Shown here in pieces: positions 13,615 to 62,655 of a stretch of 64,000 nt of DNA. The DNA comes from Gracilinanus agilis. Its lineage: Eukaryota. The notes beneath the pieces were generated by a model. The model saw only the letters and a list, made by a program, of their open reading frames with translations, did no database searches and was not told the DNA's origin. The DNA lies in contig NC_058132.1 in the NCBI RefSeq assembly GCF_016433145.1, positions 16,905,261 to 16,969,260 of the forward strand, read 5' to 3'. Each line of letters begins with the position of its first letter. The stretch's first letter is position 1. Made by a program: the position numbers and the translations under genes.

Positions 13615-13647
<33 letters not shown>

Positions 13648-25565: not shown

Positions 25566-25648
25566 GTCCTGCCCCGGGCCCCGTGGGGTGGGAGGGAGGG
25601 GCGGGCGCGGGGCCCAGAGCCCGGCCCTCACCCTCCCCTTGTCTGCAG

Positions 25649-27077: not shown

Positions 27078-27246
27078 CAGCTCCACCGTCCCCAGCTGTC
27101 CGGGCACTCCACTGGGCCGTTCCCTGAGGGCCTCCGTGTCCCCTCTGAGCCTCAGCCCACTTTACACATGATGGTACCCCTCAGGCTCGAGGCCCAGCCG
27201 TGGACACCGAGTTCTCGTGCTGACCTCGGCCTCCCCCTCTGCCCAG

Positions 27247-27325
27247 GTTCCACTACGCTGCCCGGATCTGGGATGGGGTCAAGAAGTCCTCGGCCCTAGC
27301 CGAGTACAGCCGCCTGCTGGCATGA
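27247..27325 (+). CDS. SMG9: SMG9 last coding exon (not in the ORF track)
   Basis: cag|G TTC CAC TAC...; FHYAARIWDGVKKSSALAEYSRLLA-TGA; spliced CDS totals 523 aa with all phases consistent. Confidence 0.96.
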
Positions 27326-38825: not shown

Positions 38826-39025
38826 AGGGACAGCTAGGCAGCTCAGTGGATAGAGAGCCAGCTAGAGACAGGAGGTCTCGGGTTCAAATGTGGGCTCAGA
38901 CATTTCCTAGCTGTGTGACCCTGGACAAGTCATTTAACCCCCATTGACCAGCCCTTACCACTCTTCTGCCTTGGAACCGATTCTTAGTATTGATTCTAAG
39001 ATGGAAAGTACGGGTTTTAAGTAAA
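38826..39025 (+). mobile_element. SINE1_Mdo-type SINE (preceded by a deleted copy at about 38700-38800)
   Basis: Family consensus. Confidence 0.8.
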
Positions 39026-39280: not shown

Positions 39281-39897
39281 TTACAGGCTACTGTGAAAGG
39301 CCCGCTTTATGACTCTCTGGGCATTCTTGGCTGCCCCAGTCAGGTACGTCCTGAGCATTTGGTAAACGACGGCGAAGGAGTAGCCGCAAGAGGCCACGAC
39401 GCCCAGCACTGGCACGGAGGACAGCTCCTTGGCAAAGACCCCTGTGGGGCCGTGGGTGGCCTCGGCCAGCAGCTCGATCACCTGCGCCTCGGTCACCTCT
39501 GTGGAGGGCCCCAGGATGGCGCTCTGCATGACCCGCAGGGGCTGGCCCGTCTGCTGGGCCAGTTTGCAGAGCGAGGTGGAGTCCAGGCCAAAGCTGCGGC
39601 GGTAGGTGTCCAAGGAGCGCATGAGCTGGCTCAGGTCGCAGGTCACTCCCTTCACTCCTGGCACAGGCTGAGGGTTGCTGCTACAGGCCACCGTGGCCAC
39701 GAGCCAGATGTGCTGCTTCAGGGTGTCCTTCTTCTTCTCCAGGATGGCCTGGGACACGTTGGGGAGGGCCACCAGGAAGGCGTGGTGCTTCTGGGAATCC
39801 ATGTCTTTCTCTATGATTTCAATGAGTAACTGGAAGTCGTACTTGCCCAGCTCAAACATGGAAAGCAGGAAGACCTCGGGGTCCATCACCCCCTCAT
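39281..39897 (-). CDS. Second IRG (p47-type) GTPase gene, coding exon 2 (G5 and C-terminal helical domain)
   Basis: Acceptor ttcttgtcttcctcag|AT at 39898; EGVMDPEVFLLSMFELGKYDF...YRRSFGLD...AQRVIKRAFHSSL-stop aligns collinearly with the IRGC C-terminal half in this window. Confidence 0.9.
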
Positions 39898-40104
39898 CTG
39901 AGGAAGACAAGAATCCTAGTGGTCTTTCCGGGGCCCCTTCTCTCCTCCCACTTCGTGGTCCCCCTTCCTCCTGGAAACTTCTTCCATTACTCAGCACCCT
40001 CTTTTCTGAAGAAGACTTTGCTCCACCTTCCAGACTGTCTCCCCTCTTCCTGGAAGGCTGGCTTAAGTAAGTGCCTTAAGGAAGTCTTAAACAGAGAAGG
40101 GCTC

Positions 40105-40490
40105 AGGGACAACTAGATGGCTCAAAAGATAGAGAGGCAAGCCAGGAGACAGTGAGGGAGGGTCCTCAGTTCAAATCTGGCCTCAGACCATTCCCAGCTA
40201 TGTGATCCTGGGCAGGTCACTTAAACCCCATTGCCTAGTCCTTACCTGTCTTCTGCCTTGGAACCAATATACCATATTGATTCTAAGACAGAGGGTAAGG
40301 GCTTAAAAAAAAAGAAAAGAAAATGGGGTCTCCTGGGGCAGCTAGGGAGCAAAGTAGATAGAGTACCAGGCCTGGAGTCAAGAGGACCTGGGTTCAAATC
40401 AGGCCTTCCTAGCTGTGTGACCTTGGGTAAGTCACATAATTCCAATTCTGTGGCTTTTACCACTCTTCTGTCTTAGAATTGTTGTCAGAA
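40105..40490 (+). mobile_element. Two adjacent CORE-SINEs (about 40105-40320 and 40336-40490)
   Basis: Two tRNA-like heads, each followed by CORE. Confidence 0.8.
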
Positions 40491-40627
40491 CCTAAGTGTC
40501 TTTTAAAAAAGAAAAAAAGATAAGGTCTCTCTCTGTTATCTAGGGCCTATCTCCTCCAGATCTGGTCATTCTCCTCCTCCTCTGGGAAGCCCTACCAAGC
40601 TTCCTAACAAGCCCCTGTCCAAAGGAC

Positions 40628-40999
40628 TGTATAATTGAAAATCTTGAACCTTTTGGACTCCATCACCCAGAATTCTTTTTCATCTCCCAGAATCCTTTTT
40701 AACTTCATTCACATAGCGTCTTTACATATTGTGTATATAGTTGTCTGTAACTCCACCTCTCGCTCTCTTTTTTTCCTTACGTGCAAGATTGGGTTGGCAC
40801 CCATCTTACTCTAGCTCTTTTTCTTTAGTTATTATTAATAAACTTTATAAAATATAATACTTAGTTATTGTATATTAATTTTAATTCTCACAATTTGGCA
40901 ACCACGAAGGGACAGAATTCTAAAAAATATTTTTTAAACCTTTGAGAAAAGAATTCTAGGAGATGGAGTCCAAAAAATTCAAGATTTTCCAATCATACA
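40628..40999 (+). mobile_element. ERV LTR plus tRNA-Arg PBS, closed by an inverted copy of the LTR 5' end, 4-bp TSD
   Basis: TG...CA LTR 40628-40892, AATAAA 40837, PBS TGGCAACCACGAAGGGAC 40896-40913, 53-nt inverted arm 40947-40999, GGAC on both flanks. Confidence 0.75.
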
Positions 41000-43838
41000 G
41001 GACACAAGACTTAGCTACAACATCAAGACCACCCCTCCCCCAACTTGTCCTGGAAGCTTGACTGCCAGAGCTTAACTCTCACTGGGCAGGCAGTCCTCTA
41101 ATGGTCCTGTGCATTCAAATTAGGACTCCCCAAATTCTGTAGGACAGGCACGACGAATGCCACAGAATCCCAGGCTTGCAGGGAGATGTCCAGGACAGAA
41201 GAGGGAGGTATCTAATGCAACCCCTTCCTGAGCAGGAACACCTTCCACAATTGATCATCCAGCTTCTGTGGGAAGATGCCTAATGGCAGAATGCTCACTA
41301 CCTGGGGTGTTTTATCATTGTTTTAATTTAATATTTAATTAAGTATTATTGATTCATTTTCTTATTTTATATTATATATAATATTAACATTTAATTATAT
41401 CATTATTCATGTAGTAATAATTATTATTCATAGAATCACTACACCTTGGAATTGTGAGGAGGGACTTCAGAGGGCATCTAGTCCAGCCCTGACCTGTGCA
41501 AAAATCTCCCTCCAAAATCTGAAAGAAGCCATCAACTCTCATGGAAACTCACTACCTGCCACGTCAGTCCATTCCTCACTGAAAGAGTTCACCCATTTAG
41601 ACCTGGAAGATCCTGGAGATCATCTACTGAAGAGGAAATGGACAACCAGAGAGGCTGTCATATTCAAAGTCACAAAGTGTCCAAGGAAGGATTGGAATGC
41701 AGATCCTCTAACTTCACCATCTTTTCCGCCACACCACAGTGCCCTCAACCCTGAATTGTTTGAAAGTTCTTCCCTAACATGCAGCTCACAACTGCCTTCT
41801 GCCTCCTGTTCCACCCTCCAGGTGGGACTAAAACAAGGGGACTGGATAGATTGTTCTCCATGCCCTCCCAGCTCCATCTCTGGGGTCCTGCAAGCCCGTG
41901 GTCAAGCCCAGTCGATTTTCCAGGCTTCCTCATCTGCTACCAAACACAGATACTTAGAAAACCCAGACTTACTATGGAAAAGGCTCTTCCATGTTCATTC
42001 CTCCTATTTTCCTGGAGGACACTATCTAGGCTTCACCTTTCCCTTTCACACCTTCCCTCTTCTCATACCTGCTTATAAATTCCATCTACCTCCATCAGAT
42101 TATGATTCCTTGAAAGCAGGGTCTGGGTCCCATCTCTGCAGCCCCTTGTCCAAGCAGATGCTCAATTAAAGTTTGTAGAATAGAACTGAACAGAGCCCTG
42201 GCCTTGGACCTCCAGCTGGTATTCTCTCCCCTTCATGAAAGAAAGGTCCTGCTCAGAGCGGTGACTAAGGTGGGCTGAAAGGGACTTTGCTGGGGGCACT
42301 TAAATGCAAAGGGTACAAAAATGAGCTCTTGGCCTCTTTCTGAAGACCCCTACTCACTAACTGGCAATTCTGCGCTTTGTTGAAGAGAATAATTAGTCCG
42401 ATAGGAAACCACCACTATCTTTGTGCTACTAGAGTAACTAATGACTCCTCCTGTTCATCTAGACTTCTCTAAAATTGCTTCCTGAACTGCTTTCACAGCA
42501 GGAATCACCACATTGATTTGAGGGTCTGCTTTGCTGCTTGACTCAGGTGCCCAGACTGCTACCGAAAGCTCTTCCCATTCTGATCTTTCTGCCCTCCTCT
42601 ACCTCCAGTAATAAAGGTGCCCCTCTGGGGTGTGGCAGCTTCTAGAAGGCTCACGAGAAGGTTTTCTGCCTCGTTTCCATTTTCCATCCCAAGACCCTCT
42701 CAATTCTGTTGTAGTTCACACCCATAGATTTGTCTAGGGGTGGGATCTCCATATGGCCCCCCAATTTAATGTGACCATAGTTCCCCTCTCCGGTTCTCAT
42801 TCTCTTCCTCATTCATTCAAAGAGAAACATTCCCACCCTGCTGACTTCATGAAACGATCTCTAAGATTGAAAACTCAAAACCAAATCTTGGAGGATTGAC
42901 TAAAGGAATTGGGAATGTTTAGTCTGGAGATTCAGGGGGAACAGGAGAGCCACTGTCCAATATGGCGGTCTTTGGAGAAAAGATTCAACGTATAGCTTAG
43001 GGGAAATTACAGAGAGACCAAACGAACATTAGAAAATCCACTCATCCCCAAGAAAGAATGGGAATACTTTTGGAATTGAGAGAGAGGCATCCCCAGACCC
43101 TGAGAGCCCTTGGCAAAAAAGCAGAGGGTGGGCAGCTTATAAAACAAATGCTGACCAAGTTACAGTTGAGCATGGGAAAATTAAGAGATCTACTGACCCT
43201 AAACATGAAGAGACAGAGACATGGGACTTGGTGACCACTAAATACAATTAGGAAAGGAAAAAAAAAACAGAGGTAAACCTGAAGACACAGAGAGGAGAAA
43301 TTCTGGTTTTGTGTTCAGAGAGGATGGCCTGCGTTGAAGAATCTGCTGAGAGGAAATCAGGCAAATTTCTAGATAAATTTCTGAGAAATGGGGTAGGGCT
43401 CTTGCCTTATACAAGTCTTCTATGAGGGCTTGTAGACTTTCTACTTTCTAAATGAGCTGCTGCAGGAAAGGTTTCAGCCTTTTCAGAGAAACAAAGCATG
43501 GCAGAGCCCACTCTCCCCATGAGGAAGAACGCTCTCTCTCTCTCTAGCTAAGGATTCCAGTTGAAATCAGAATTTGAAATGGGAGAGAAACTCCAATATT
43601 TCATGCCCATTGGACCTCTGCCTGCCAGCTGCCAACACTGACCACACATCCATTAGAACAAAGCTGGGCAGCAGCCACAGGAGGCCAGTAGAGAGCAATG
43701 CTTGACAGAAACTAGAAATCTGATCCAGCTGTGTCGCCACATGTTCTCTAGCTGCAGATGTCACTTCTATTTGTGCCCCTCTATGCATAGGTTTTGACCA
43801 CACATATATTGTCTGGGTATGCCCCTTTACATGTGGGT

Positions 43839-44350
43839 NNNNNNNNNNNNNNNNNNNNNNNNNNNNNNNNNNNNNNNNNNNNNNNNNNNNNNNNNNNNNN
43901 NNNNNNNNNNNNNNNNNNNNNNNNNNNNNNNNNNNNNNNNNNNNNNNNNNNNNNNNNNNNNNNNNNNNNNNNNNNNNNNNNNNNNNNNNNNNNNNNNNNN
44001 NNNNNNNNNNNNNNNNNNNNNNNNNNNNNNNNNNNNNNNNNNNNNNNNNNNNNNNNNNNNNNNNNNNNNNNNNNNNNNNNNNNNNNNNNNNNNNNNNNNN
44101 NNNNNNNNNNNNNNNNNNNNNNNNNNNNNNNNNNNNNNNNNNNNNNNNNNNNNNNNNNNNNNNNNNNNNNNNNNNNNNNNNNNNNNNNNNNNNNNNNNNN
44201 NNNNNNNNNNNNNNNNNNNNNNNNNNNNNNNNNNNNNNNNNNNNNNNNNNNNNNNNNNNNNNNNNNNNNNNNNNNNNNNNNNNNNNNNNNNNNNNNNNNN
44301 NNNNNNNNNNNNNNNNNNNNNNNNNNNNNNNNNNNNNNNNNNNNNNNNNN
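43839..44350. other. Assembly gap (inside the coding intron of the second IRG gene)
   Basis: N run. Confidence 1.
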
Positions 44351-44639
44351 TGTAAATGTTTAAGCAAAATTGAGATAATTTATCAAGGATGTCATAGAAT
44401 GCTGACTAGGAATTGGAGTAGATGGGATAGTTGCAGGATGAAGCCAATAGAGAGAGAAAGAAAATGAGATAGAGAATAATCAATAGAGAGAGAGAATAAT
44501 CAATAGAGAGAGAGAGATCCTGAGAGAGAGAGATCCTGAGAGAGAGGAGAGGGGCCTGGATCTACTGCATCCTGAAATGGGAGAGAAGAGAAAAAAAAGC
44601 AGATGAAGCCAGAGAAGGCTGTCTACTAAGTTTAAATTA

Positions 44640-44830
44640 AGCTGAGTTCAAATCTGGCTTCAGACACCAACTATCCATGTAACCCTAGCCCAGTCACTTA
44701 ACCCTGTTGGCCTCAGTTTCCTCATCTGTCAAATGAGCTGGAGAAGAAAATGGCAAACCATTCCAGGATCTTTGCTAAATTCCCAAATGGGGTCATAAAG
44801 AGTCAGATACAACTGAAAAAAAAAAATGAA
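44640..44830 (+). mobile_element. Mar1-type CORE-SINE
   Basis: CORE plus ggggtcataaagagtcagatacaactga tail. Confidence 0.75.
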
Positions 44831-45360
44831 TGACAACAAAAATAAATTGATCTAGAAGCTCTCCAGGGGACCTTCAGGCTTGAGATTTCAGGATTTTATG
44901 AAATGAAGGATATTAAAGTAGTGAGCCTCCCTTCTCTAGAGATTTTTAAGTTGAGGTTGGATGACCATTTGTCAATAAGGCTATGGAAGGAATTCCTGTT
45001 TGTGGAGGGGTTCGGCCAGACACCCTTTGTGGGGGCCCGTCTGCCTTGAGATTTTAGAATTCTATTGATATTAGGGATAGGAGGGTAGTGAGCTCCCTGT
45101 CCCTAAAGGTCTTCGGAGCAGAGGCTGGATGACTATTGATCACTGAGTCTACAGGACAATTCCTACTCAGGGAGGGGTTGGACATTCTTAGGCCACCTCA
45201 GTTCTGAGATTCGGTGCTTCTTTAGTCCTATCAAGCGTATGAGTGATTAAAGAAGTCGAGGTCTGTTTTGAGAGATGGCCCATCTGGGGAGTAGCCCTTG
45301 GGGATCTGAGACTGACCATTCTGGGCCCCCCAGATTGTTCCCTGAACGCCCATTCCTCAC

Positions 45361-45901
45361 CTTCCAGTTCGGTACAGCATTTCGCCCGGATCTCACAGAG
45401 CACGCCTTCCTCAGAGAAGGTGGTGGGCCGGCGTTGGCGGGAAGCAGCCATGTCGATGTCGACCTTAGAGCGGATAAAATAGAAGGGTTTTCCCTGGTCT
45501 TGGATGGCGCAGGCGAGTTGAGCGTGGCTGGTGGTGAAGCGTTCAGAGACCATGATGAGGAAAAAGTCATAGCGGCTGGGCAGGAGCTTATCCAGGTACT
45601 TGTTAGCTTCCATCAAAGGGGTCTCTACGCCTGGCATGTCCCAGATGATGACGTTGGGGAATTTGGGGTGTGGGTATGGTGTTGGGTCAGCGATGATCTC
45701 AACCACCCCCGTCTTGGCCGAGCCTTGGTCTTCATCGCCCAGGCCACGGATGACGTTGACAAAAGTGGACTTGCCCGACCCTGACCCTCCTGTGACAGCA
45801 ATGTCCAGACGGACGTTCTCTAGGTCTTGAAGGGTAGCCCGGAGCTTGGCAGATGCCACTGGTACTGTGCCTTCTTCGAAAGTTTCCTGGGGAGCAGCCA
45901 T
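45361..45901 (-). CDS. Second IRG GTPase gene, coding exon 1 (N-terminus, G1-G4)
   Basis: Acceptor cttcag at 45905 then GGG ATG G (good Kozak); G1 GGSGSGKS, G3 WDMPG, G4 RSKVD; donor GAAG|gtgagg at 45360, phase 1. Confidence 0.9.
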
Positions 45902-46134
45902 CCCCTGAAGAGGAGGAGTCGAAGTGTCTCTCCTGGGTTGTCTCTGGCCGTAAAATGAGAAGGCTCAGGGAGTTTCAGCTTGGGGGCCGATGGATGACCT
46001 TTGAGGGAAGGTGGGAAGGAGACATATCAGGCATCCCTCTGCTCACTGGGAGCAATGGGAAAGTCCCTTCCCGTCTTCGGGCCTAAATTAGTTTCACTAT
46101 AAAAGGGGGAAGTTATCTGAGGGCTCTCCCAATT

Positions 46135-46445
46135 CCCAATTCCATGTCCTAAGGACCTACCTACCCAGATCTGATTATTCTCCATTCTAAGGGTTCCCCC
46201 AACGCCAACATTCCATGTTCTAAGGACCTACTCAGCCCTGGCATTCTCTATTCTAAGGGTCCTCCCAGCTCTGATGTTCTCTGTTCTAAGGTCCTCCCAG
46301 CTCTGATATCCCATGTTCTAGGTTCCCTCTCAACTCTAACATCCTATGTTCTAGGTTTCCACCTGGATATGACATGTTCTAAGGTCCAGCTCCAATATGA
46401 TAGACCTGGATGACCTCTATGTCCCACTTCAAGCTCTAAATCCTT
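46135..46445. repeat. Degenerate ~30-bp tandem array (…ccatgttctaaggtcctcccagctctga…)
   Basis: About ten recurrences of (g)ttctaagg/ttctagg at short, regular spacing. Confidence 0.75.
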
Positions 46446-48040
46446 TAACTTTGTGACTCGTAAGTCCTCCATGTCTTAGGGAAGTTGATTCAGTGGACTA
46501 GAACATATAAGTCTGGCTTGGCCCCGCTTCACTACACACATCTCCAGCCATTGGCCACCAAGCCATTATTGTCCCTGGGCCTCTCCTCCCCCCTTATTTC
46601 CACTTCTTTGGCAATAATCAAATCAACTCTGCTGGGTTCCTAGTTAAAGAGCATCTCTCTATTCTGACCCTACCCACCACTCTGGGGGTTTTCTTACCCA
46701 AGAACCCCTCCCTAGCCAACCCTGCTGAACCTGTGCTCTCACCATCCAGTGGGCACCTGTATATGCTCCCTTCCCAGCCCCTCCCCAGGTTTAGTCCAGT
46801 GCTAGGTACTTAGAATCACTCAATAAACATATCTGTGCCCAGATTAACAAAAGAGAAAAGAGAATCCTTAAATAATCCCATCTCAGAAAAAGAAATTGAA
46901 CAAGCCATCAGTGAATTCCCCAAGAAAAAATCCCCAGAGCCAGCTGGATTTGCAAGTGACTTCTATCAAACATTTAAAGAATAACTAATCCCACTACTAT
47001 ATATATAAACTATTTGGGAAAATAGGCAGAGGAGTACGACTAAATTCCTTTTATGACACAAATATGGTACCATTACCTAAGCCAGGAAGAGCAAAAACTG
47101 AGAAAGAAACTTACAAGCCAATTTCCTTAATGAATATTAATGTAAAAAGTTTAAATAAGATACCAGCAAGGAGACTATAGTAATATATGACAAAGATCAT
47201 TCACTATGAACAGATGGGACTTACACCAGGAATGCAGGACTGGTTTAATACTAGGAAAACCATCCACAATATGGACCATATCAATAAATAATCTAACAGA
47301 AATCACATGATTATCTCAATAGATGCAGAAAAAAAACCTTTGACAAAATACAATACCCATCCCTGTTTAAAAAAAAAACACTAGAAAGCATAAGAAAAAA
47401 TGGGTCATTCCTTAAAACGATAAATTGTATCTACCTAAAACTTCGTCAGGTATCATCTGCAATGGGGATGTTAGAAGTCTTCCCAATAAGATCAGGAGTA
47501 AAGCAAGGATGCCCATTATCACCTCTATTATTCAATATTGCATTAGAAGTGCTAGCTTTAGCAGGAAGGAAAGAAAAGGAAATGGAAGGAATGAAAGTAG
47601 GAATTGAGGAAACTAAACTATCACTTCACAGATGATATAATGGTATACCTAGAAAATCAATTAAAAACTAGTTGAAATAAGTAAAAACATTAGTGAAGTT
47701 GCAGGATATGAAATAAATCCATATGAACCATCAGAACCATATATTATTAACAAAGTTCAGCAACAAGAGATAGAAAGAGAAATTCCACTTAAAATCACTC
47801 TAGACAGTATAAAATGCCCAGGAATCTACTGGCCAAGACAAACACAGGAATTTCATGAACACAATTACAAAATACTTTTCACACAAATAAAGTCAGATCT
47901 AAATAACTGGAAAAATATTCATTGCTCTTTGGTAGGCTGAACTAATATAATTAAAATGACAATCCTACCTAAATTAATTTACTTATTCAGTTTCACACTA
48001 ATCAAACTACCAAATAATTATTTTATAGAACTAGAAAAAA

Positions 48041-48311
48041 TAAATGCCATCTACATCCAGAGAAAGAATAGTGGGAGTAGAAACACAGAAGAAAGACATT
48101 TCCTTGATCACATGGTTCAATGGGGATATGATTGGGGATATAGACTCTAAATCACTCTTTTGCAAATATTAATAATATGGAAATAGATCTTGATCAATGA
48201 TACTTGTAAAACCCAGTTGAATTGCATGTTGGCTGAGGGAGGTGGGGTGGGAAGGAATATGAATCGTGTAACCATGGAAAAATATTCTAAATTAATTAAT
48301 TAAATTTAAAA
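48041..48311 (+). mobile_element. Short L1 3'-end insertion nested in the L1
   Basis: 14-bp TSD AGAACTAGAAAAAA at 48027-48040 and 48312-48325. Confidence 0.8.
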
Positions 48312-48612
48312 AGAACTAGAAAAAACAATGAAATTCATGTGAAACAACAAAATGTGAAAAATGGTGACCTAGCAGTCCCAGATCTTAAATTGTGCTATAA
48401 AGCAGCAGCAATCATCAAAACAATCTGGTGCTGGCTAAGCAATAGAATGGTAGATCAATGGAGAAGATTAGATACACAATACACAGGGATAAAAGACCTC
48501 AGGAATCTAGTATTTGACAAACCCAAAGATCCTGGCTTTTGGAATAACTCACTATTTAAAAAAAGACTACTTGGAAAAATGGAAAACAGTATGACAGAAG
48601 CTTAGTATAGAC

Positions 48613-48805
48613 CAGTGGTTCCCAAACTTTTTTGGCCTGCCACCTCCTTTCCAGAAAAAAATATTACTTAGCCCCCTGGAAATTAATTTTTTTTAATTTT
48701 AATAGCAATGAATAGGAAAGCTAAATGCACCTGCAGCTGTCACCGCCTCCCTGGATCACTGCAGCACCCACCAGGGGGCGGTGGTGCCCACTTTGGGAAT
48801 CACTG
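48613..48805. mobile_element. hAT MITE nested in the L1
   Basis: TIR CAGTGGTTCCCAAA/TTTGGGAATCACTG; TSD GTATAGAC with a 1-nt deletion in the right copy. Confidence 0.88.
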
Positions 48806-50129
48806 GTATAACCAATATCTCACACCCTATACCAAGATAAGGTCAAAATGGATAAATGATTTAGCTATAAAGAGTGATACCATAACCTAATTAGGGGAAC
48901 ACAGAATAGTTTGCCTGGAAGATCTGTGGAGAAGGGAAGAATTTATGACCAAACAAGAGATAGATAATAGTTAAGATGTAAAATGAATAATTTTGATTAA
49001 ATTAAAAAGCTTTTGTACATACAAAACTTACAACCAAGATTAGAAGGAAAATAACAAACACGCGGGGGGGGGGTGGCTTTTATAACAAATGTCTCTGATA
49101 AAGGCCTAATTTCACAAATTTAAAGAGAACTAAGTCGAATTTATATGAATATAAGCCATTCCCCAACTGCCAAATGGTCAAAGGATATGAACCAGCAATT
49201 TTCAGATGAAGAAATCAAAGCCATCAATAATCATATGAAAAAATGCTCTCAATCACTCTTGGTTAGAGAAATGCAAATTAAAACAAAGCTGAGGTAGCAT
49301 CAGATTGGCCAGTAAAGGAGACTGTTAAATGTTGGAGGGGGTGTGACACAATTGGGACACTAATGCATTGTTGGTGGAGTTGTGAACTGATTCAACCATT
49401 CTGGAAGGCAATTTGGAATTATACCCAAAGGGCTAGAAAAATGCGCATATCCTTTGATCCCATAATACCACTACTGGGTTGGTATCCCAAAGAGATTAAA
49501 AAAAGAAGAAGAAGGGGGAAAGGATCTACTTGTATAAAAATATTTGTAGCTACTCTTTTTATAGTGAAAAAGAATTGGAAATTGAGGAGATGTACATTAA
49601 TTGGAGAATGGCTGAACAAACTGTGGTACATGTTGGTGATGGACTACTATTATGCTCTAAGAAATGATAAGCAAGATGGTTAGCGAGAAAGATCTGCAGG
49701 AACTGATGTAGAGAAAAATAAGCAGAACTGGGGGAGCGCCGTACACACTGACAACAATATTGGATGGTGATTATCTGTGAAAACTTGGCTACTCTCCGCA
49801 ATGCACTGATCTGGGATAATCCTGAAAGACTTATGGCAGAGAATGCTCTCCACTTCCAGAGAAAGAACTGTTGGAGGCATTTTTCTTTTTAGTGTATTTA
49901 TGGTTTTATTTGGGGGTTTTAGTTATATATGAGTTTGTCCTTACAACGATGACCAATATGGCGGTGGGTTTTGCATGCCAACCTCAAAAAAATAAATAAA
50001 AAGTAAAAAAGTAAAGAATGCCTAATTTTCAGGCCAAATAAATAAATAAACATATTTGCATTCATTCATTCCTTGAGGATCTCCTATATTGCTTACTAAG
50101 CAGTAGAAGAATAAGAACTGGAGAAAAGG

Positions 50130-50310
50130 TCTATCTCTCTCTCTCTCTCTGTCTCTCTCTATCTCTCCCTGTCTTTATCTCTCTGTCTCTGTCTGTCTCT
50201 CTGTCTCTCACTTCCTCTGTCATTCTCTTTCTCTCTGTGTCTCTGTGTCTGATGTCTCAATCTCTGTCTCCCTGTGTCTGTCTCTGTCTGTCTCTCATCT
50301 CTCTGCATCT
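50130..50310. repeat. CT/CTGT low-complexity tract
   Basis: Degenerate tandem units. Confidence 0.85.
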
Positions 50311-51643
50311 CTTTGCTTCCTCGCCCTTGGAGATCCTGCACATAATAGGTACTTAACAGAATTCGGGGCATTGAATTGGCTCCTGCCATCAAAGACTTTC
50401 TACTCAGGGTTCAGACTGACTTAAGTGTCTGTTTACTCAGGAAGTTTCCCAGCAGTCTCTGAGAGATCCTCCTAACAGTCCTGGAAGACTGGCTCTCTGA
50501 TTGTCATTTTACTGGGGAAGATACTCAAATTTAAAGCAGTTAAATGGTTTACTCAAGGTCTTTACTGCCTGGATCTCTCCTCTCGGGACCCAAAGCCCAG
50601 TCTTTCCTGTCTACACATCCGGATGCCTCCACTAAACCCAGTCACAGGAAGAGGAGCAGCTACCATTTCTGTGCAGCAATTCTGGCTCCCAGGTGAGGGC
50701 ACATCCATGACCTCATGAGCTTTTCCCATAGTTCTGGGATGGATAGGGAGTCAGGCTTATTAGCTCCATTTTACAGATGGGGAAGTAGAGGTTTAAGGAT
50801 CTGCCCACCCAGTGAGTCACCCTTCCTGTTCCTAGGGTGGTTGGGACGGTGCAGAGAGGGAACTGAGAGGGCTTCCTGGAGGAGGAGGGAGAAGTCTTGG
50901 GTCTGGGGTGGGTGTGAGGCGCTGAGCCAAGACTTTGGGTTGATTACTGAGAAAGGGGAGGAGGGTCCTCTGAGTCACTGCAGTTAATTAAGCCCAGAAC
51001 TGGGGAGATGTGTGGAGAGGGATCCTGAAGGGGAGAGGGCTAGCCCTAGGAAAATCCACCTACACTTGCTGACTCCTCAGGGCCCCCCCACCCCCACCCC
51101 GCTCCACACCTGGCCACTCCTGGCCAACGGACTTTTGTCTTCCTCCTAAAATTGTCCCCATGAAGGAGGGGAGGATTTATTAAGCTCCTGAGGTGTGCCA
51201 GGCACTGTGCTTAACCACAATATTACCTGATTTCATCCTCTCAGCAACCCCAGGAGGTACATGTTGTTATCATTCCCATTTTGCCGAAAACAGAGACAGA
51301 GAGATGAAGTGGTGTGTCTGGGCTCAGACTCGAATCCCCTGGACTCTGGCCACACAGACACAGCCCAAGCACTCTATCCACTGCACCACCTAGTTTCGAG
51401 GCTTGGGGGTAGGGTGGGGGACAGGGAACGGACAGGACCAGGAGATGCTCCTAAAAAATGGGCTTGAAGGAATCCTGGGAAGCTAGGAGCTAGGTACAAG
51501 AGCCCCCCAGGCTTCAGGGACAGCTGATGATAAGGAGATGGAGAGATGGAGTGTTGGGTGCAAATAGCCCTGAATAGCAGAGTCAAGACAACTGGCAAGG
51601 TAGGGAGAGGCCAGCTGAGAAAGGCTTTAAAAGCCAAACAGGA

Positions 51644-51850
51644 GGTAGCGGGGTGGCTCAGTGGACTGAGAGTCAGACCAAGAGACAGGAGGACCTGGCT
51701 TCAAATCCAGCCTCAGATACTTCCCAGCTGTGTGACCCTGGGCAAGTCACTTAACCCCCATTGCCCAGCCCTTATCTCTCTTTTGCCTTGGAAACAACAC
51801 ACAGTATTAATTCTAAGAGTGAAGGTAAGAGTTTAAAAAAAAGAAAAAGA
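51644..51850 (+). mobile_element. SINE1_Mdo-type SINE
   Basis: Family consensus with A-rich tail. Confidence 0.85.
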
Positions 51851-52599
51851 AAAGCCAAACAGAAGATTGTGTATTTGATCCTGAAAGTCATAGAGAACCC
51901 CTGACATTTATTGGATAGAGGCAGGAGGGCTGGTGGAAGGGGGAAGGTTCACTTAGCAAACCTACAATCCATCTTTAGCAAAGCAGCCAAAATGATCTGC
52001 TCAGACCTTGCCAGGGTCCCTCCCCTGCTCCAGCACTCCTGTGGCTCCCTACTCCCAGTGAAATAAGGCACCGACTCCTCTGTTTGGGCTTTGAAAGCCC
52101 TTCCTAACTAGTTCCACCTACTTTTCAGGGATTGTCTCCAGGCTTACTTGTCTTACTTGCCTCCCTCCCCGCTACATAGTAGATGCTTACAACACTGTTG
52201 GTTGAATGTAGCGGAGGGAATAGTTGGGAAAGAGTAACACTCTCTGTGCCTGGCTACTTTGGCGGTGTCTCACTCCACCTTGGAGGGGGACTCCCTTCAC
52301 TAGAGCAGATTGCGACCCCCTGATCAGAGGAGCCGGTCTTCACACCGGGGTAAACCTGCTCAGGAGCTTGAGGAGCCCCGTCCAGGCTAATCCTCAGGGG
52401 CCGCAGGCTCAGCACCAGGCGGACTCGGGGCCTTTCCAGCCGGCTGAAGGACGGAACTTGGGTTCTGCTGTCGGGATCTCCGAAGAGCCAGTGAGGAGGC
52501 ATCCAAGGAGACGGCCAATGGTGAACTGAGATCCAGTACTTCACCACTCTGATAGCACATTAGGCCACCTGGGGTTGGTGGTGGGTTTGGGTTTAGGCC

Positions 52600-52745
52600 C
52601 TTACCTCCATCTTAGAACGATAACTGATCCCAAGGCAGAAGAGCCGGGAGGGCTAGGCAGAGAGGGTTAAGTGACTTGCCCAGGGTCACCCAGCTAGGAA
52701 GTGTATGAGGCCAGATTTGAACCCAGGACCTCCCCTGGCTCTCAA
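52600..52745 (-). mobile_element. SINE1_Mdo-type SINE
   Basis: Reverse consensus, partial. Confidence 0.75.
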
Positions 52746-52974
52746 GACGCTGCTCTTGGAATTAGAAAGTTCTGAGTTCGGGTTCCTTGCCGGCACACGC
52801 TGGCTATCGGTGAGCAAGACGTAGAAAGTATAAGAATACTAGCTAGCATTTCTATAAGGCTTTCGGGTTTACAAGATGCTTTATTGGCTCCTTTTATCCC
52901 CCTGGCAACTCTAGGAGTTGTTCCCATTATGGAGATGAGGAAACTGAGGCAAACAGGTTAAATGACCTGCCCAA

Positions 52975-53170
52975 GGTAGAGCAGTGGATAGAGTTCAATT
53001 GTTCAGACACTTACTAGCTGTGTGACCCTAGGCAAGTCACTTTACCCCGTTGGGCTCATTTTCCTCATATGTCAAAGGAGCTGGAGATGGAAATGGCAAC
53101 CCAAGCTAGTGTCTCTGCATGAAAACCCCAAATGGGGGCCACAAAGAGTCAGACATGACTGAAACAACTG
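52975..53170 (+). mobile_element. Mar1-type CORE-SINE
   Basis: CORE plus ggggccacaaagagtcagacatgactgaaacaactga tail. Confidence 0.78.
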
Positions 53171-54021
53171 AATGATAAAAAGGGACTGAAGCCACATTTG
53201 AACTCAGAACTTCCTAATTCGGGTCCAGGGTTTACTCTGTCCACTGCCCCTCCTCGCTGACTCACACAGTATGTGAGACACGACACTGTGTGACGTCAGG
53301 CTAATGACTTAACATCTCAGGTCTGCCAGGTGATTCTCTAGGAAGGGGAGTGGAAGAACTGGTGCAGAATCAATTCAGGAGAGGGATTTTACACACTGGG
53401 AGTTTCCCAGTCCAAAAGAATCTGTTATTGTGTTGTTGTTCCTTAAGGGCAGGGATCTCCTTTGGGAAATCCATCCCACCGAGGCAGAAACAGCTCAGAG
53501 ACTTTCCCAGGCTCTCATGGACGTTATGTATATCTGAGGTGGGATTTGAACCCAGGTCTTCTAGATCCCAAAGCCAGGTCTCTGGCCACTATATCACATT
53601 GCCCGTTACTCTGATAATATTTCCTTGGATTCTAATAACTGTAGTATAATATAGTTTAGTTGTGGTGGGGATGGGGCGAAGGGAAGGGGTTCCGACTGCC
53701 AATCAGCTTGAGTGTGGGTCTGAGTGGGAGAAGAGGGTACCTGGTTCTGGCCTGGGTGTGATCCGGGGTTCCCCTAGTCTGTCCCTGCCACGCACACATC
53801 CCAGCCCCCAGCAAATAGCGTCCCTCTGAGACCAGAGAGAGAGGACGAGGGGAAGCAGACCTAGCTCACTCTCCGTGCCTTGGTTTGACCAAAGTGTAAA
53901 TAATGGATCCCCATGGTATCCCTCTCTGGCTTCTGGCCTTTCTCTATGGCCAAGGAAAGCCTGATTCATAGTTTCCAAAGCCAAAGCTGAGGGATCTTAA
54001 GAATGCATTAATCATTGGGCA

Positions 54022-54210
54022 CCAAGGTGGCTCAGTGGATGGAGAACCAGGCCTGGAGATGGAAGGTCAAATTTGGCCTCAGACACTTCCTAGCGGTGTG
54101 ACCCTGGGCAAGTCACTTAATTCCCATTGCCTAGTCCTTGCTGCTCTTCTGCCTTGGAACCAATACACAGTACTGATTCTAAGAGGAAAAGTAAGGGTTT
54201 AAAAACAATT
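54022..54210 (+). mobile_element. SINE1_Mdo-type SINE
   Basis: Family consensus. Confidence 0.85.
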
Positions 54211-54443
54211 TTTTAATTAAAAATATATGCATTAAGCTTGTGCCAAGTGTTCATGGGCCAGTCCTAGATAGAGTGGTGAGACCTTGCAAGGGTTCAGTCC
54301 CGAGTTTGAGTCTTGGCTCTATTGCTCAGTTCCCCACTGCCTTTTAGGTGGTGTCTTCATCTGTAAAATAGACTCTTAAGATCTCTTCCAACTCTGATGG
54401 TGCCAGCTGTTCCCTCCCTCTCCCAATTCAGGTCCACCTAGAG

Positions 54444-54654
54444 CAGTGATGGTAAACCTTTTAGAGACCGTGTGCCCAAACTACACCCTCACGCCCATGT
54501 GAGCCGCCCTCCTTATCCCCAGACAGGAGGGAGAAAATGCTCCCATTGGGCTGCTGGGCAGAAGGGAGGGTCATGTGAGAAAGTCCTCAGGCGTGTATGG
54601 AGAGAGGAAAGGGAGTGGCATCCACCACCGTGCGCCATAAGCTCACCAACATGG
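54444..54654. mobile_element. hAT MITE of a second family
   Basis: Left TIR CAGTGATGGTAAACCT, degenerate right TIR, TSD ACCTAGAG/ACCCAGAG (7 of 8). Confidence 0.75.
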
Positions 54655-55784
54655 ACCCAGAGTGAAGGACACTTGGCCCATATCAGGCTGGTCTGAGTCC
54701 TGGACTTGAGATAAGAATGCCAAGGCATGAATCCACCCTCCCAAATTCACAAGCTTTGGGTAACTCAGAGCAAGCTCCTCCCTTTTCTGGGCCTCTTTCC
54801 TCCTCAGCAGCTGAGTGACCCTGAGCAAGTCAATGTTGTTTGCCTCAGTTTCCTCATCTGTAAAATGAGCTAGCTGGCCTCTGGGGTCCCTTCTAGGTCT
54901 AACGAGATGATCCTAGCACCCTTTTCTCACAGGATTGTAAAGTTGGAAACCTTATGGCGCCACTCCCCAGTGTGCCTGTCCTCCAACCACATTCTGCTTT
55001 GTGTTGGTCTCACCTGAGCCTCCTTATTCCTTCCCCTCCTTCAACCCATCTTTCTTCTTCTCTAGAGACACCTCCATGTCCTGCCATTTTCACTGGCCAT
55101 CCCCAGTGGGGATCCCTGGAAGGCTGTTCCTCCTCATCTGTGCCTCCCAGCTTCCTTCAAGTCTCAGCTAAACTGCCTACAGGAAGCCTTTCCTGATCCC
55201 TGGTAATCCCGGTACCCTCTCTCTCACTTATCCCCAATTTAGCCTGTGTCTAGCCTGTTTGCCCATGTTTTTGTTTTGACTCCATTAGACCATGAAGCTC
55301 TCCGAGGGCAGACTATCTTTTCCCTTCCTCTGTTCAGCCAGCCCTGGTGTAGTGCCTGGCACGCAGTGGGTGCTTTATAAATGTTGACTCTCCTCCAGCA
55401 GACCAAAGAGGTGAAGCACTGGATCTCACCTGGCTTACCAGACTGGGCACAGGAAAAAGGAACCCTGGGAGGCCGAGCCAGGTACTAAAAAGGACGGCTT
55501 CCCTCCCTCTCCACCCCACCCACATATACATCACACCCCCGGTCCGAGAGAGAGCCATAGAAAGTGCCCGAGGTCATCTTTCTCATTCTCTGCCCACTCT
55601 GTCACCTCAGCCACACCAGCTGACCGTCACAGTCACAATCACCAACGCCGGTTACACTCATAATCCCCCTCAAAGAATGTCCTACTCTGGAAGCCCTCAA
55701 ATCACACAGTTGGCCACAGTCACTCTCATGGGACCTCATTACTATCTTCTTCTGCAGGGGCAGACTCCAATGGATAAACTTCCT

Positions 55785-56680
55785 CCCCAAAACCTTCCTT
55801 TCTCCTCCCACTGTTGCCCTTTGGGAGGCTGGAACATGAAAGATAGTAGAGTTGGGTTGAGTTTAGAAGCCATCGTTAGAGCCTGAAACTCTTCTCATCC
55901 ACTTCCCCAAAAAGAACATCCTTTCTCCTCCCACAGTTGCCCTTTGGGAGGGCAGAACCTGAAAAAGGGTAGGGACCAGTTGGGATGAGGAGTTGGGTTG
56001 GGTTGAAGAGCCATTGTTAGGGGCTGAATTCCCCCCCAAAACACCCTTTCTTCTCCCACAGTTGCCCTTTGAGAAGCTGGAACATGAAAGAGGGTAGGGA
56101 TGAGATGGGATGAGGAGCCATTTTTATAGGCTGAATCTCATCTCATCCACTTCCCCCAAAAACCTTCCCTTCTCCAAGAGAGTGGCCTTTGGGAAGACAG
56201 AACATGAAAGAGGGTAGGATTAGGTTGGGTTGGGTTGGGTTGGGTTGGGTTGGGATGAGGAGCCATTTTTAGAGGCTAAATCTCATCTCATCCACTTCCC
56301 CCAAAAACCTTCCCTTCTCCAAGAGAGTGGCCTTTGGGAAGACAGAACATGAAAGAGGGTAGGGATGGGATGGGTTGGGTTGGGATGGGATGGGATGGGA
56401 TGGGTTGGGTTGGGTTGGGTTGGGTTGGGTTGGGTTGGGTTGGGTTGGGTTGAGGAGCCATTTTTAGAGGCTGAATCTCATCTCATCCACTTCCCCAAAA
56501 AACCTTCCCTTCTCCAACAGAGTGGCCTTTGGGAAGACAGAACATGAAAGCAGGTAGGGATGAGTTGGGTTTAGGAGCCATTTTTAGGGGCTGAAACTCA
56601 TCTTCTACACTCCCTTCCCCCCCCCCAAACATCTTTTCCCCTCCCAGAGATGTCCTTTGGGAGAATGGAAGGTGAGTCGG
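55785..56680. repeat. Compound minisatellite of ~105-195 bp units with embedded (GGGTT/GGGAT)n
   Basis: GAGCCAT(T)TT...CCACTTCCCC...GCCTTTGGGA...AACATGAAA core repeated six to seven times. Confidence 0.92.
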
Positions 56681-56781
56681 TTCGGGTGGTTTCGTTGGCA
56701 TTTTTAGGGGCAGAAGCTCACGTCCCCTTATCTTCCACGAGATGGGGCGGCCCTGCCTCCCCACCCGCCAGGCTAACTCAC

Positions 56782-56840
56782 ATTTAGCAGGGCTTTCCTT
56801 TGGCCCTGGCCCCTCTGCCTCCTCTGTTGGCTGCCGGGCC
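56782..56840 (-). other. Candidate non-coding exon 1 of the second IRG gene
   Basis: Donor AAT|GTGAGT at 56781 is homologous to the IRGC donor at 61241; lies below a duplicated CCAAT/TATA-like promoter; 5' end approximate. Confidence 0.6.
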
Positions 56841-56930
56841 AGACTGTTGCTAGGGCCCATTGTAATGAGATCTGGATGCTGATTGGTTGGCTCCTAGGGG
56901 TGGGGGTGGGGGCATCTTCGGGTAAGGGGG
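56839..56930 (-). promoter_or_regulatory. Promoter of the second IRG gene (paralogous to the IRGC promoter)
   Basis: CCAAT 56882-56886, TTACAAT 56859-56865, CACCC boxes, GAS-like TTACCCGAA 56917-56925; aligns with 61312-61383. Confidence 0.65.
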
Positions 56931-57347
56931 GCAGAGTCCTGGCGTGGAGCCAGGGGACTGCCATCGAAGGACCCTTTAGGGTCCAAAATGGGAAGAGGAG
57001 ATGGGCGGGGGACGGACACTGTCTACACGGCTCCCTCGTCCTAGTCTCTTCTCCCCTCTCGTGGATGCTTGCAGCACCCCACCAGGAAGCCTCTGTGCCC
57101 GGCGCCCCCTTCCCCGAGGACGACACGCCTGTGGGCTGAAGAAGGGGGAGCCGGCCCCCCGCCCCCAGCCCTCGCCCCCGGCAGGCCGGTCTAGAAGCAG
57201 TGCGAGTCTCCCAACCCGTTGGTTTCTTCACATGGACTTTTTTTTTGGTAGGGATCGGGGACGGGGGTATGGGAATTGGAATGGGGGATGTTGGGATGGA
57301 GTGCTCAGGAGGGGGGGTTTTCTTTCTTTGGGGGAGAAGTGGGCGTC

Positions 57348-57353
57348 TTTATT
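57348..57353 (-). terminator. Candidate IRGC polyadenylation signal overlapping the stop codon
   Basis: Minus strand reads GAG AAA TAA A, creating AATAAA; no other canonical hexamer seen before the next promoter. Confidence 0.55.
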
Positions 57354-58743
57354 TCTCTTCGACCACGTCCCGTTTCTTCCAGCTCTCCAGAATGTACTTG
57401 AGCAGCAGTCCAAGCTTCCGGCGGGCTGAGAGTGGAGCGTCCTCCCCGCCGCCCTCGCCTGCCCCCCTCTTCTCCAACCCAGGCCCGCTAGAAGCGACGT
57501 CGAGGCGGGCGTCGGGGGCGGCCACCTCCTCTTCCAGGGCCTTGATGCGGACACGCTGGGCGTCCTCGGCCATCTCGTTCAGGCAGCCCTGGAGCATGGT
57601 GTAGACGGTCCCGAAGGAGATGCCGCCGGCCACGAGTGTCCCGAACACGGGGATGCCCTTCTCGAAGGCCCGGGCCACACGCATGGCCCCGTCCGATGAC
57701 TGAGCGTACATACGCAGCACCGCCTCTGGCGAGACCTCGGTGGCCAGGGGCGAGCGGATCACGGAGCGCAGGTCGCCGGCCTGCTTGCCCACCTGCTCGG
57801 CCAGCCTGGCCAGGGAGTCGTCGTCCAGGCCGAAGCTGCGGTGGTAGCCCCGCAGGGAGCGGATCAGGAGGGCGTCGTCGTAGGCGGCTGCCAAGCCCGG
57901 CACGGGTAAGGCCTGGATGACCCCGGACACCAAGGCCGTCTTCAGCACCTGCTCTTGGAGGGCGTCTTTCTTCTTCTGCAGGGCCTGCAGCGAGATGTCT
58001 GGCAGGGACAGGAGGCCGGCGTGGCGGCGATGGGCCGGGAGCTCCCGCTCCCACGTGGCCACCAGCAGCGGGAAGTCGTAGCGGGCCGGCGAGAGATTGG
58101 ACACGAGGAAGATCCGGGGGTCCTGGACGCCGGCGGCCCGGAGGCGCTCCGCGCAGTGGTCCCGGATCTCCTGGAGGACGGCGTTCTCGCTGTAACCCGA
58201 TGGGCGCTGGGTGCGAGACGCCGCCAGGTCCTCGTCCACTTTGGTGCGGATAAAGTAGAATTTCTTGCCCTGACGGAGGATCTCGCTCGCCAGTCGGGTC
58301 TCCACGGCCCCACAGCGACGGGGTGAGACCAGGAGGAAGAAATTGTAACGAGCAAAGTCTACTTGCTTCAGGTACTTGTCGGCTGGACAGCCGGGAGAGC
58401 CGGCCCCGGGCAGGTCCCACAGCATGAGCTCCGGCAGCTGCGGGTGGGGGTACGGGGTGGGCTGGGTCGTGGTCTCGATGACGCCCGTCCGGGCCGCACC
58501 GGGGTCCTCTGCCCCGATCCCTCGAAGGGCGTTGATCAGAGAAGACTTTCCGGCCCCGGACTCGCCGGTCACTCCCACCTCGAGGCGGCTACTCTCTGCG
58601 TTGCCCAGCAGCTCCCGGAGGCGGGAGGCAGCCTTGGGGATATCCCCCAGCTCGAAGGCTGCCCGAAGAGCCTCGAGCTCTTCTTTAGCCATGAGGATGG
58701 TGCTCTCCTCCTCGGACGGTGGGGCATGTGACTTGGACGCCAT
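57349..58743 (-). CDS. IRGC: Immunity-related GTPase cinema (interferon-inducible GTPase 5), single coding exon, 464 aa
   Basis: ATG at 58743 (MASKSHAPPSEEESTILMAKEELEAL...); GESGAGKS, WDLPG, TKVD, SN motifs; C-terminus RKLGLLLKYILESWKK typical of IRGC; syntenic next to SMG9. Confidence 0.96.
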   Translation of the reverse strand: MASKSHAPPSEEESTILMAKEELEALRAAFELGDIPKAASRLRELLGNAESSRLEVGVTGESGAGKSSLINALRGIGAEDPGAARTGVIETTTQPTPYPHPQLPELMLWDLPGAGSPGCPADKYLKQVDFARYNFFLLVSPRRCGAVETRLASEILRQGKKFYFIRTKVDEDLAASRTQRPSGYSENAVLQEIRDHCAERLRAAGVQDPRIFLVSNLSPARYDFPLLVATWERELPAHRRHAGLLSLPDISLQALQKKKDALQEQVLKTALVSGVIQALPVPGLAAAYDDALLIRSLRGYHRSFGLDDDSLARLAEQVGKQAGDLRSVIRSPLATEVSPEAVLRMYAQSSDGAMRVARAFEKGIPVFGTLVAGGISFGTVYTMLQGCLNEMAEDAQRVRIKALEEEVAAPDARLDVASSGPGLEKRGAGEGGGEDAPLSARRKLGLLLKYILESWKKRDVVEEK

Positions 58744-61241: not shown

Positions 61242-61310
61242 ATTCACAGAGGAATTTCCCACACCCCTCAGACTCTCCCCGCCCACGGGGTCTCTCCCCG
61301 TTTGCCTGGG
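61242..61310 (-). other. IRGC: Candidate IRGC non-coding exon 1
   Basis: Donor AAT|GTGAGT at 61241; acceptor with long pyrimidine tract at about 58827-58834; IRGC is known to have a 5' untranslated exon. Confidence 0.65.
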
Positions 61311-61311
61311 C

Positions 61312-61385
61312 TCAGACCCCGTTGCTAGGGGCCATTATAACAGGGGCTAGCGGCTGATTGGCTGGCTCCGCCCGGCCGGGTAACA
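61312..61385 (-). promoter_or_regulatory. IRGC: IRGC core promoter
   Basis: Minus strand order: GC box GGGCGG (61368-61373), CCAAT (61357-61361), TTATAAT (61334-61340). Confidence 0.7.
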
Positions 61386-62462: not shown

Positions 62463-62655
62463 GGGGGTAGCTAGATGGATAGAGAATCAGGTCTGGAGAG
62501 GCAAGGCCCTGGGTTCAAATGTAACCTCAGACACTTCCCAGCCGTGTGACCCTGGGCAAGTCACTTCACCCTCATTGCCTAGCCCTTCCCACTCCTCAGC
62601 CTGGGAACTAATACCTAGTATAGATTCCAAGCCAGAAGGTAAGGGTTTAAAAAGA
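62463..62655 (+). mobile_element. SINE1_Mdo-type SINE
   Basis: Family consensus. Confidence 0.85.

Follow-up and report, generated by a model that had tools for sequence, protein, structure and literature searches.

What is the second GTPase gene that lies beside IRGC in a marsupial genome, and where did its coding intron come from? The question is raised by a stretch of 64,000 nucleotides of Gracilinanus agilis (contig NC_058132.1, positions 16,905,261 to 16,969,260 of the forward strand), which was analysed as a whole and is called the window here. Between SMG9 and IRGC it carries, on the minus strand, a second and intact gene of the immunity-related GTPase (IRG) family whose coding region is interrupted by an intron; IRGX is used here as its working name. 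Taken as a whole, the observations are best explained by a tandem duplication that gave rise to IRGC and IRGX before the monotreme split and by a subsequent intron gain in the IRGX lineage, independent of the intron in the irgf genes of fish, and we consider this explanation likely.

The first coding exon of IRGX occupies 45361 to 45904 (minus strand), with the ATG at 45901-45899, and contributes 541 coding nt, that is, residues 1-180 and the first base of codon 181. The last coding exon (39281 to 39897, minus strand, 617 nt) encodes residues 181 (in part) to 385 and ends with the stop codon TAA at 39283-39281. Between them lies a phase 1 intron (39898 to 45360, minus strand, gtgagg...ttgtcttcctcag) of 5463 bp, including a gap of estimated size. 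As read from the sequence, its donor is GAAG/gtgagg, with the first intron base at 45360, and its acceptor is ttgtcttcctcag/AT, with the last intron base at 39898. When joined in phase 1, the 541 and 617 nt give 1158 nt encoding 385 aa and a stop, with no internal stop codon. The initial annotation, which had joined two minus-strand open reading frames (ORFs) in this way without stops or frameshifts, was confirmed by this reading and by the spliced translation, which is identical letter for letter to the NCBI protein "interferon-inducible GTPase 5-like" of Gracilinanus agilis (P0001, 385 aa). IRGX is already predicted in RefSeq under this generic name with the same two coding exons and is not a new gene.

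Exon 1 matched positions 11-183 of the Pfam profile IIGP (PF05049; E 5e-59) and exon 2 matched positions 187-315 (E 1e-22). Since the matches are collinear across both exons, nothing is missing between the two pieces. In a BLASTP comparison with the IRGC of the window, identity was 47% over IRGC residues 49-227 and 37% over residues 231-433, and the junction aligned without a gap; the earlier view that no extra exon is needed agreed with both results. The significant IIGP match of IRGX thus spans the G domain and extends into the first part of the C-terminal helical domain, as in the IRG (p47) family.

When the protein collection was searched with IRGX exon 1, the closest relatives were "GTPase 5-like" proteins and not IRGC. 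IRGX proteins were found in the marsupials Dromiciops, tammar wallaby and Tasmanian devil, in platypus among the monotremes and, among eutherians, in at least 8 bat species, about 10 carnivores and one mole. Whale models were also present, that of Megaptera being flagged LOW QUALITY PROTEIN and that of Balaenoptera being just 335 aa long. The same search with exon 1 found no primate, rodent, lagomorph, afrotherian or ungulate IRGX, the human and mouse loci not being checked directly. Loss of IRGX appears to be limited to some eutherian lineages, and the gene seems to be missing from primates and rodents, in keeping with the initial statement that human and mouse carry no IRG gene between SMG9 and IRGC. 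The platypus protein (P0004, 413 aa) is unusual in that its C-terminal ~90 residues align with no other IRGX and in having a 1-residue insertion just after the intron site, for which a frameshift, an error in the model or degeneration of the gene in platypus could be responsible.

The gene order in the window is SMG9 (plus strand), IRGX (minus strand), IRGC (minus strand). In cat (L001), IRGC (5992-7386) is followed by IRGX (10001-11852) and then by a convergent minus-strand gene of 520 aa at the relative place of SMG9; in Dromiciops (L008), IRGC (1006-2403) also precedes IRGX. In the reptiles Sceloporus (L002) and Carettochelys (L005), an IRG gene adjoins an SMG9-like gene. The position of the second IRG gene between SMG9 and IRGC was thus confirmed. 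The proposed history, in which the gene was kept in marsupials and lost in eutherians, did not hold, since cat has IRGX at the same place and with the same intron, and bats, carnivores and the mole have orthologues.

Gracilinanus IRGX retains the motifs G1 (GGSGSGKST), G3 (WDMPG) and G4 (RSKVD), as annotated initially and confirmed by alignment, and agrees with the pattern of the GKS class (GX4GKS, DXXG, (T/S)KXD). By homology and likeness to the motif, FLLS is the putative G5 stretch. The best solved structure was Irga6 (4lv5_B, E 7e-70, residues 9-312), the matches to Irga6, Irgb10 and Irgb6 ranging from E 1e-64 to 7e-70, and the protein most likely has an Irga6-like G domain between helical domains and still binds guanine nucleotide. 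In switch I, T64 and E68 are present as the equivalents of Irga6 Thr102 and Glu106, and I70 (codon 45692-45694 in the window) stands at the Thr108 position, so that the catalytic interface is not conserved in full. In the alignment, Ile at the Thr108 equivalent was seen in Gracilinanus only. In Irga6, the T108A substitution abolished oligomerisation and hydrolysis, and GTP binding was unaffected (PMC3042988).

The three other marsupial proteins all depart from the GKS-class motifs. In Dromiciops a 4-aa deletion removes the Gly of G3, in wallaby this Gly is changed to Ser, and in Sarcophilus (devil) the P-loop Lys is changed to Arg and WELPD is found. The mole protein also has Ser in place of the G3 Gly, and eutherian IRGX mostly retains the motifs. 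Because of the Ile at the Thr108 equivalent in Gracilinanus and the loss of the G3 Gly or the P-loop Lys in the others, marsupial IRGX probably hydrolyses GTP weakly or not at all and is on the way to becoming a quasi-GTPase.

Between Gracilinanus and Dromiciops, the dN/dS of IRGX was 0.47 by NG86 and 0.33 by YN00, and that of IRGC was 0.04 and 0.03, respectively (marsupial-cat pairs were saturated, and for those only the NG86 dN/dS was used). The IRGX value had a bootstrap range of 0.35-0.63 and was below 1 in 300/300 bootstraps, with 0.37 for the exon 1 part and 0.54 for the exon 2 part, so the dN/dS analysis that had been proposed as a check showed constraint in both exons. IRGX is constrained yet fast-evolving. 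A decaying relic with an open frame, functionless or unexpressed and represented at NCBI by a homology prediction only, would fit the roughly tenfold higher dN/dS than in IRGC, the Ile at the Thr108 equivalent, the motif lesions of Dromiciops, wallaby and Sarcophilus, the apparent loss in several eutherian orders and the flagged Megaptera model. Nevertheless, we consider it unlikely that Gracilinanus IRGX is such a relic. The intact ORFs measure 381-415 aa, the donor, polypyrimidine tract and acceptor are conserved between long-separated species, dN/dS stays below 1 in each exon and in all bootstraps, and the promoter block described below is conserved. Moreover, loss of catalytic residues with retention of the fold is how quasi-GTPases of the IRGQ type look (Bekpen 2005, PMC1297648).

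For the map of intron positions, splice points were set by requiring that the spliced genomic DNA translate exactly to the database protein; platypus P0004, wallaby P0003 and softshell-turtle P0423 were left out of this map at the DNA level. The introns of Gracilinanus (exon 1 of 541 nt, ...CCTELE/D/EGVM), Dromiciops (exon 1 of 529 nt, intron of 8018 bp, ...CRAYLQ/A/EGVV) and cat (exon 1 of 604 nt, intron of 604 bp, ...CGRRLR/A/EGLK) are all in phase 1 and fall in one alignment column, with a common gtgagg donor and tgtcttc(c/t)(t/g)cag acceptor. In about 20 more short eutherian-like contig ORFs, IRG homology is lost at ...RLE/GE(V/A/G). This break is the read-through of a G/GTGAG donor at the IRGX intron site, so that the intron must be at least as old as the ancestor of therians.

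The start of the intron, GTGAGG (45355-45360), resembles the start of exon 2, which is xTGAGGG (39891-39896) in Gracilinanus and Dromiciops and CGGAGGG in cat. An origin of the intron by tandem duplication was considered and rejected, since the likeness of 5-6 nt is set by the Glu-Gly codons and the 3' end of the intron is unlike the end of exon 1; the resemblance was judged to be probably due to chance.

The irgf genes of zebrafish and pufferfish have a single intron in common, located where G-domain helix 4 ends, as the initial annotation had stated; in puffers it is 81 bp long (Bekpen 2005, PMC1297648). The fish genes nearest to IRGX were assigned to irgf on the strength of a cyprinid query, which retrieved "immunity-related GTPase family, f1" of Danio rerio (P0143). 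Zebrafish irgf1 (L007) has a single phase 1 intron of 180 bp at ...RKDCIN/G/LRKIGIED, and an irgf-clade gene of Colossoma (L003) has a phase 1 intron of 113 bp at ...RKDCIE/G/LEKIGVD. In the codon alignment, the fish intron interrupts the Gly codon of C-I-N/E-G-L and lies 5' of the mammalian site by exactly 3 codons (9 nt). From the conserved Cys to the Gly-(Val/Ile/Leu)-x-x-Pro anchor, the alignments of 12 and 27 sequences had no indel, except for one Vulpes deletion and one platypus insertion, the latter downstream. The phase 1 intron in the Gly codon of C-I-x-G-L that marks teleost irgf is thus absent from IRGX, whose intron lies 3 codons downstream, and the claim that it sits where fish irgf genes have theirs was abandoned, a deviating intron position having been named at the outset as refuting it.

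In an AlphaFold2 model of IRGX (mean pLDDT 78.8), a helix formed by residues 164-181 follows G4, and the intron splits its last residue, D181, in agreement with the earlier placement at the end of this helix. The fish site corresponds to residue 178 of the same helix. The mammalian and fish introns are therefore at the same place in the secondary structure and at different places at the nucleotide level, which defines intron homology.

The coding region is uninterrupted at both sites in Sceloporus, Carettochelys, Lithobates (L004), the shark Hemiscyllium (L006) and Alligator (L009), and also in the IRGC of Gracilinanus, Dromiciops and cat. In Alligator, residues 1-408 of a turtle protein align in one frame. 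In the NCBI model of 362 aa for the alligator locus (10001-20957), the coding sequence departs from the single IIGP exon near residue 344 and is spliced over an assembly gap (11568-12276) to a short exon some 9 kb distant; this model is probably an artefact, because the open frame runs on to about 11206 and aligns to a full-length turtle protein. With IRGC and all mapped non-mammalian relatives outside irgf uninterrupted at both sites, the proposal that IRGC arose with intron loss was not upheld, and the rare intron gain named initially as the alternative became the better reading.

The maximum-likelihood tree (LG+C20+F+G4 PMSF) contained 85 rows, which were chosen by eye from the named matches to cover the clades. 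Partial models, tandem-domain proteins, most near-duplicates and the matches of the representative library, mostly unnamed tandem-domain proteins, were excluded. Reptiles and cichlids have many such proteins, "GTPase 5-like" and 560-790 aa long with two tandem IIGP domains (P0401, P0405, P0409-P0422; P0187, P0190, P0193). Therian IRGX was supported at 100/99, its grouping with platypus at 98/91 and that with P0423 of the softshell turtle Pelodiscus at 96/82. IRGC, including echidna, formed a clade (100/100) on a long stem (0.6), and a clade of Alligator, IRGC and P0423 plus IRGX had support of 97/99. The irgf clade (100/100) lay outside the latter, the base of the tree being without resolution. 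Forcing IRGX and irgf into one clade cost 56.9 log-likelihood units and was rejected by the approximately unbiased (AU) test (p 0.001), so an ancient irgf-like lineage, as first proposed, is not supported. Because echidna has IRGC and platypus has IRGX, the duplication predates the monotreme split, and it may be older. As first proposed, IRGX is an old gene and not a recent copy of IRGC; it is also present in eutherians.

On this tree, the intron states require at least two changes. A rival reading is a single ancient intron common to irgf and IRGX, which would have slid by 9 nt in one lineage and been lost separately in IRGC and in its shark, frog, lizard, turtle and alligator relatives. Intron gain is rarer than loss in vertebrates, and such an intron would agree with the shared phase 1, with the location of both sites in the last turn of one helix and with the end-of-helix position reported for irgf (PMC1297648). 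However, the sites differ by exactly 3 codons in an alignment of 27 sequences that is free of indels between the anchors, and six independently placed relatives, including IRGC, are uninterrupted. One old intron would then need the slide and at least five losses as opposed to two gains, and it is further contradicted by the rejection of a clade of IRGX and irgf. A single ancient intron is therefore quite improbable.

The explanation that we prefer, tandem duplication followed by an independent intron gain, would proceed as follows. The ancestral gene would have consisted of a single long coding exon preceded by a 5' exon without coding function, and a tandem DNA duplication of a unit including the promoter and the non-coding exon would have produced IRGC and IRGX before the monotreme/therian split. 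A coding intron would then have arisen in the IRGX lineage, at the residue that ends the helix following G4; it was certainly present in the therian ancestor and possibly in stem mammals. The teleost irgf intron, 9 nt upstream in the same phase, would have been acquired independently. IRGX would thereafter have been retained with intact ORFs in marsupials, annotated proteins being known also from bats, carnivores and the mole, and apparently lost in primates and rodents. That this was a de novo gain of a spliceosomal intron in a single-exon IRG frame, in the mammalian stem after the duplication and 9 nt in the same phase from an independent irgf gain, appears reasonably probable. Gene structure, conservation, synteny, intron positions and constraint were observed, and the direction of the intron change, the promoter and first exon, the biochemical state and the expression are inferred. 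If true, such a gain would suggest that the end of G-domain helix 4 is a preferred spot for insertion.

Several points weigh against this explanation. It is a strange coincidence that two introns of equal phase should lie only 9 nt from each other, and gains of introns in mammals are very rare and usually regarded as nearly absent. In the tree, IRGC, IRGX and the alligator gene form a trichotomy in which the IRGC stem is the long one, and the timing of the gain is bounded just by the therian ancestor and the intronless alligator gene. Splicing and expression of IRGX in Gracilinanus are deduced from conservation and the NCBI model, and a single simple-pattern scan of 1.3 kb underlies both the assignment of promoter and first exon and the lack of interferon-response patterns, as described below. 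Finally, the motif erosion together with the roughly tenfold higher dN/dS than in IRGC could mean a slow loss of function.

The intron contains an assembly gap of 512 N (43839-44350), whose length is only estimated, about 1 kb from the donor. Since the gap is intronic, the reading frame is unaffected. The Dromiciops intron is at the same site and has no N. Comparison of the minus strand of the window with the Dromiciops locus by blastn aligned 46222-45073 to 9666-10801, 43813-42292 to 12365-13800, 41932-41432 to 16936-17485 and 40234-39024 to 18170-19421. As the DNA to either side of the gap is collinear with the Dromiciops intron, the assembly shows the two sides in their correct order and orientation. 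A false join of coding exons from different copies or scaffolds, for which the gap of uncertain true length between the two exons might speak, is hardly credible, since unique non-coding DNA on both sides has the order and orientation of the Dromiciops intron, cat and Dromiciops show the same two-exon layout without gaps, and the exon halves are complementary, with no overlap and no Pfam positions missing.

From its sequence, IRGX would be a three-exon gene, in which a candidate non-coding first exon precedes the two observed coding exons. The candidate promoter and first exon (56782 to 56930, minus strand), predicted from conservation, lie in a 252-nt block (56992-56741) about 360-610 bp past the IRGC stop that is 75.5% identical to positions 2861-3153 of the Dromiciops locus (E 5e-59). 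The block holds a CCAAT box (56886-56879), the motif ACAATGGGCCCTAGCAAC and a perfect donor, GCTAAAT/GTGAGT (exon end 56782, GT at 56781-56780). In the alignment, the CCAAT box and the GTGAGT donor are conserved between Gracilinanus and Dromiciops, and the CCAAT box, ACAATGGGCCCTAGCAAC and donor elements were also found about 500 bp past the stop codon of IRGC in cat. An acceptor-like ctcctcctcttcag ends at 45905 (minus strand), ahead of the first coding exon, and would mark the 5' boundary of the latter. Just below the candidate first exon, in the predicted first intron, 55778-56621 is a tandem array with units about 123-195 bp apart and (GGGTT)n/(GGGAT)n microsatellites.

Upstream of IRGC, a short-word search found three short collinear matches to the IRGX module (61369-61353, 61336-61321 and 61244-61235). 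The first two keep the 33-nt spacing of the IRGX module, and each match alone is weak (E 0.01-0.8). In this IRGC upstream module (61235 to 61369, minus strand), CCAATCAG lies at 61361-61354 and CTAGCAAC at 61328-61321, and 10 nt at 61244-61235 match the donor region. When 45.9-57.3 kb was compared with 58.7-64 kb by blastn at E < 1e-5, no duplicated promoter was detected, only copies of a MIR-like short interspersed element (SINE). The likeness of CCAAT box, CTAGCAAC and donor between the two modules is weak evidence, the matches being short; the collinear modules, together with the acceptor-like ctcctcctcttcag just before the ATG, suggest that the duplicated unit comprised promoter, non-coding exon and coding exon. 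The simple-pattern scan of the 1.3 kb around the candidate promoter (56000-57348) found no interferon-stimulated response element (ISRE) or gamma-activated sequence (GAS) pattern. Because the IRGX promoter module resembles that of IRGC and shows no ISRE or GAS, constitutive and tissue-restricted expression of IRGX, possibly in testis, seems more likely than induction by interferon.

The upstream tandem neighbour, IRGC (CINEMA), has an uninterrupted coding exon at 57349 to 58743 (minus strand) that encodes 464 aa from the ATG and is 95% identical to wombat IRGC and 75% to echidna IRGC. The convergent downstream neighbour is represented by the 3' coding exons of SMG9 (21223 to 27310, plus strand), which were recognised by tblastx and a structure match: the exons are conserved with the gene adjoining the IRG gene in cat, turtle and lizard, and 25642-25794 matched residues 446-495 of SMG9 chain 6l54_C in the search of solved structures (E 6e-28). 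Weaker matches to the turtle neighbour gene extend back to about 16393, and a Pfam search of single SMG9 exons gave no match. Copies of the MIR-like SINE core (GTGTGACCCTGGGCAAGTCACTT) were seen at 51650-51842, 54016-54208, 62464-62656, 53003-53048, 40161-40447 and 38827-38954. The element is also scattered through the Dromiciops locus and accounts for most self-matches in the IRGX region.

In the literature searched, no paper was found on a paralogue adjacent to IRGC, on its coding intron or on its patchy retention. A 2026 preprint uses the gene order Kcnn4-Smg9-Irgc to recognise IRGC orthologues and mentions no intervening gene. IRGX lies between Smg9 and Irgc, next to the latter, and extends the known set of mammalian IRGs by an unnamed subfamily. 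It is also a candidate for an intron gain in the mammalian stem, near but not at an independently acquired fish intron, and the stepwise loss of GTPase motifs in marsupials under purifying selection may show a route from GTPase to quasi-GTPase. Overall, the locus holds an annotated but undescribed mammalian IRG paralogue with a probable early-mammal intron gain.

Among the known IRG systems, IRGC/CINEMA, also called interferon-inducible GTPase 5, is a testis-expressed IRG that is not interferon-inducible and is needed for the integrity of the sperm fibrous sheath (PMC1297648; PMC9232189). IRGX and IRGC are tandem neighbours on the same strand and have in common the IIGP fold, the GKS P-loop, a collinear candidate module of CCAAT box and non-coding exon, the 97/99 clade and the presence in monotremes. 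IRGX differs from IRGC in sequence, in lacking the C-terminal extension of about 65-80 residues and in having a coding intron; moreover, many eutherians have apparently lost it, in contrast to IRGC, which has been described as conserved. The high conservation, C-terminal extension and single coding exon of IRGC orthologues are thus not those of IRGX, and the true IRGC is present alongside it. Bekpen 2005 (PMC1297648) mentioned a partial dog sequence as "most closely related to IRGC" and did not show it. A partial carnivore IRG near IRGC is what one exon of a split gene would give, and the dog sequence may be an IRGX orthologue.

Teleost irgf genes (zebrafish irgf1-4 and pufferfish irgf) resemble IRGX in being GKS-type IRGs whose coding region has one phase 1 intron, within the final turn of the helix that follows G4, and differ in the intron position 9 nt upstream and in their separate clade. 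The locus of zebrafish irgf1 is also unlike that of IRGX, since its downstream neighbour (L007, 13014-21377) is a called gene of 1001 aa with MACPF_SNTX, stonustoxin-helical, thioredoxin-like and IIGP domains, which looks like a fusion of a perforin-like gene and an IRG. With mouse Irga6 (IIGP1), an IRG of known structure and biochemistry, IRGX shares G1, Glu106 (E68), G3 and G4; unlike Irga6, it has Ile at the Thr108 position, no myristoylation-type MG start and a split coding region, and no ISRE or GAS was seen near its candidate promoter. Gracilinanus IRGX differs from IRGQ in retaining G1, G3 and G4 and in having no N-terminal extension, and as far as tested there is no relation of descent between them. 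Marsupial IRGX is nevertheless similar to IRGQ and the quasi-GTPases, since canonical residues for GTP binding or hydrolysis were lost lineage by lineage with the fold and the open frame retained. IRGX therefore belongs to the IRG family and can be classed neither with the IRGC orthologues nor with irgf.

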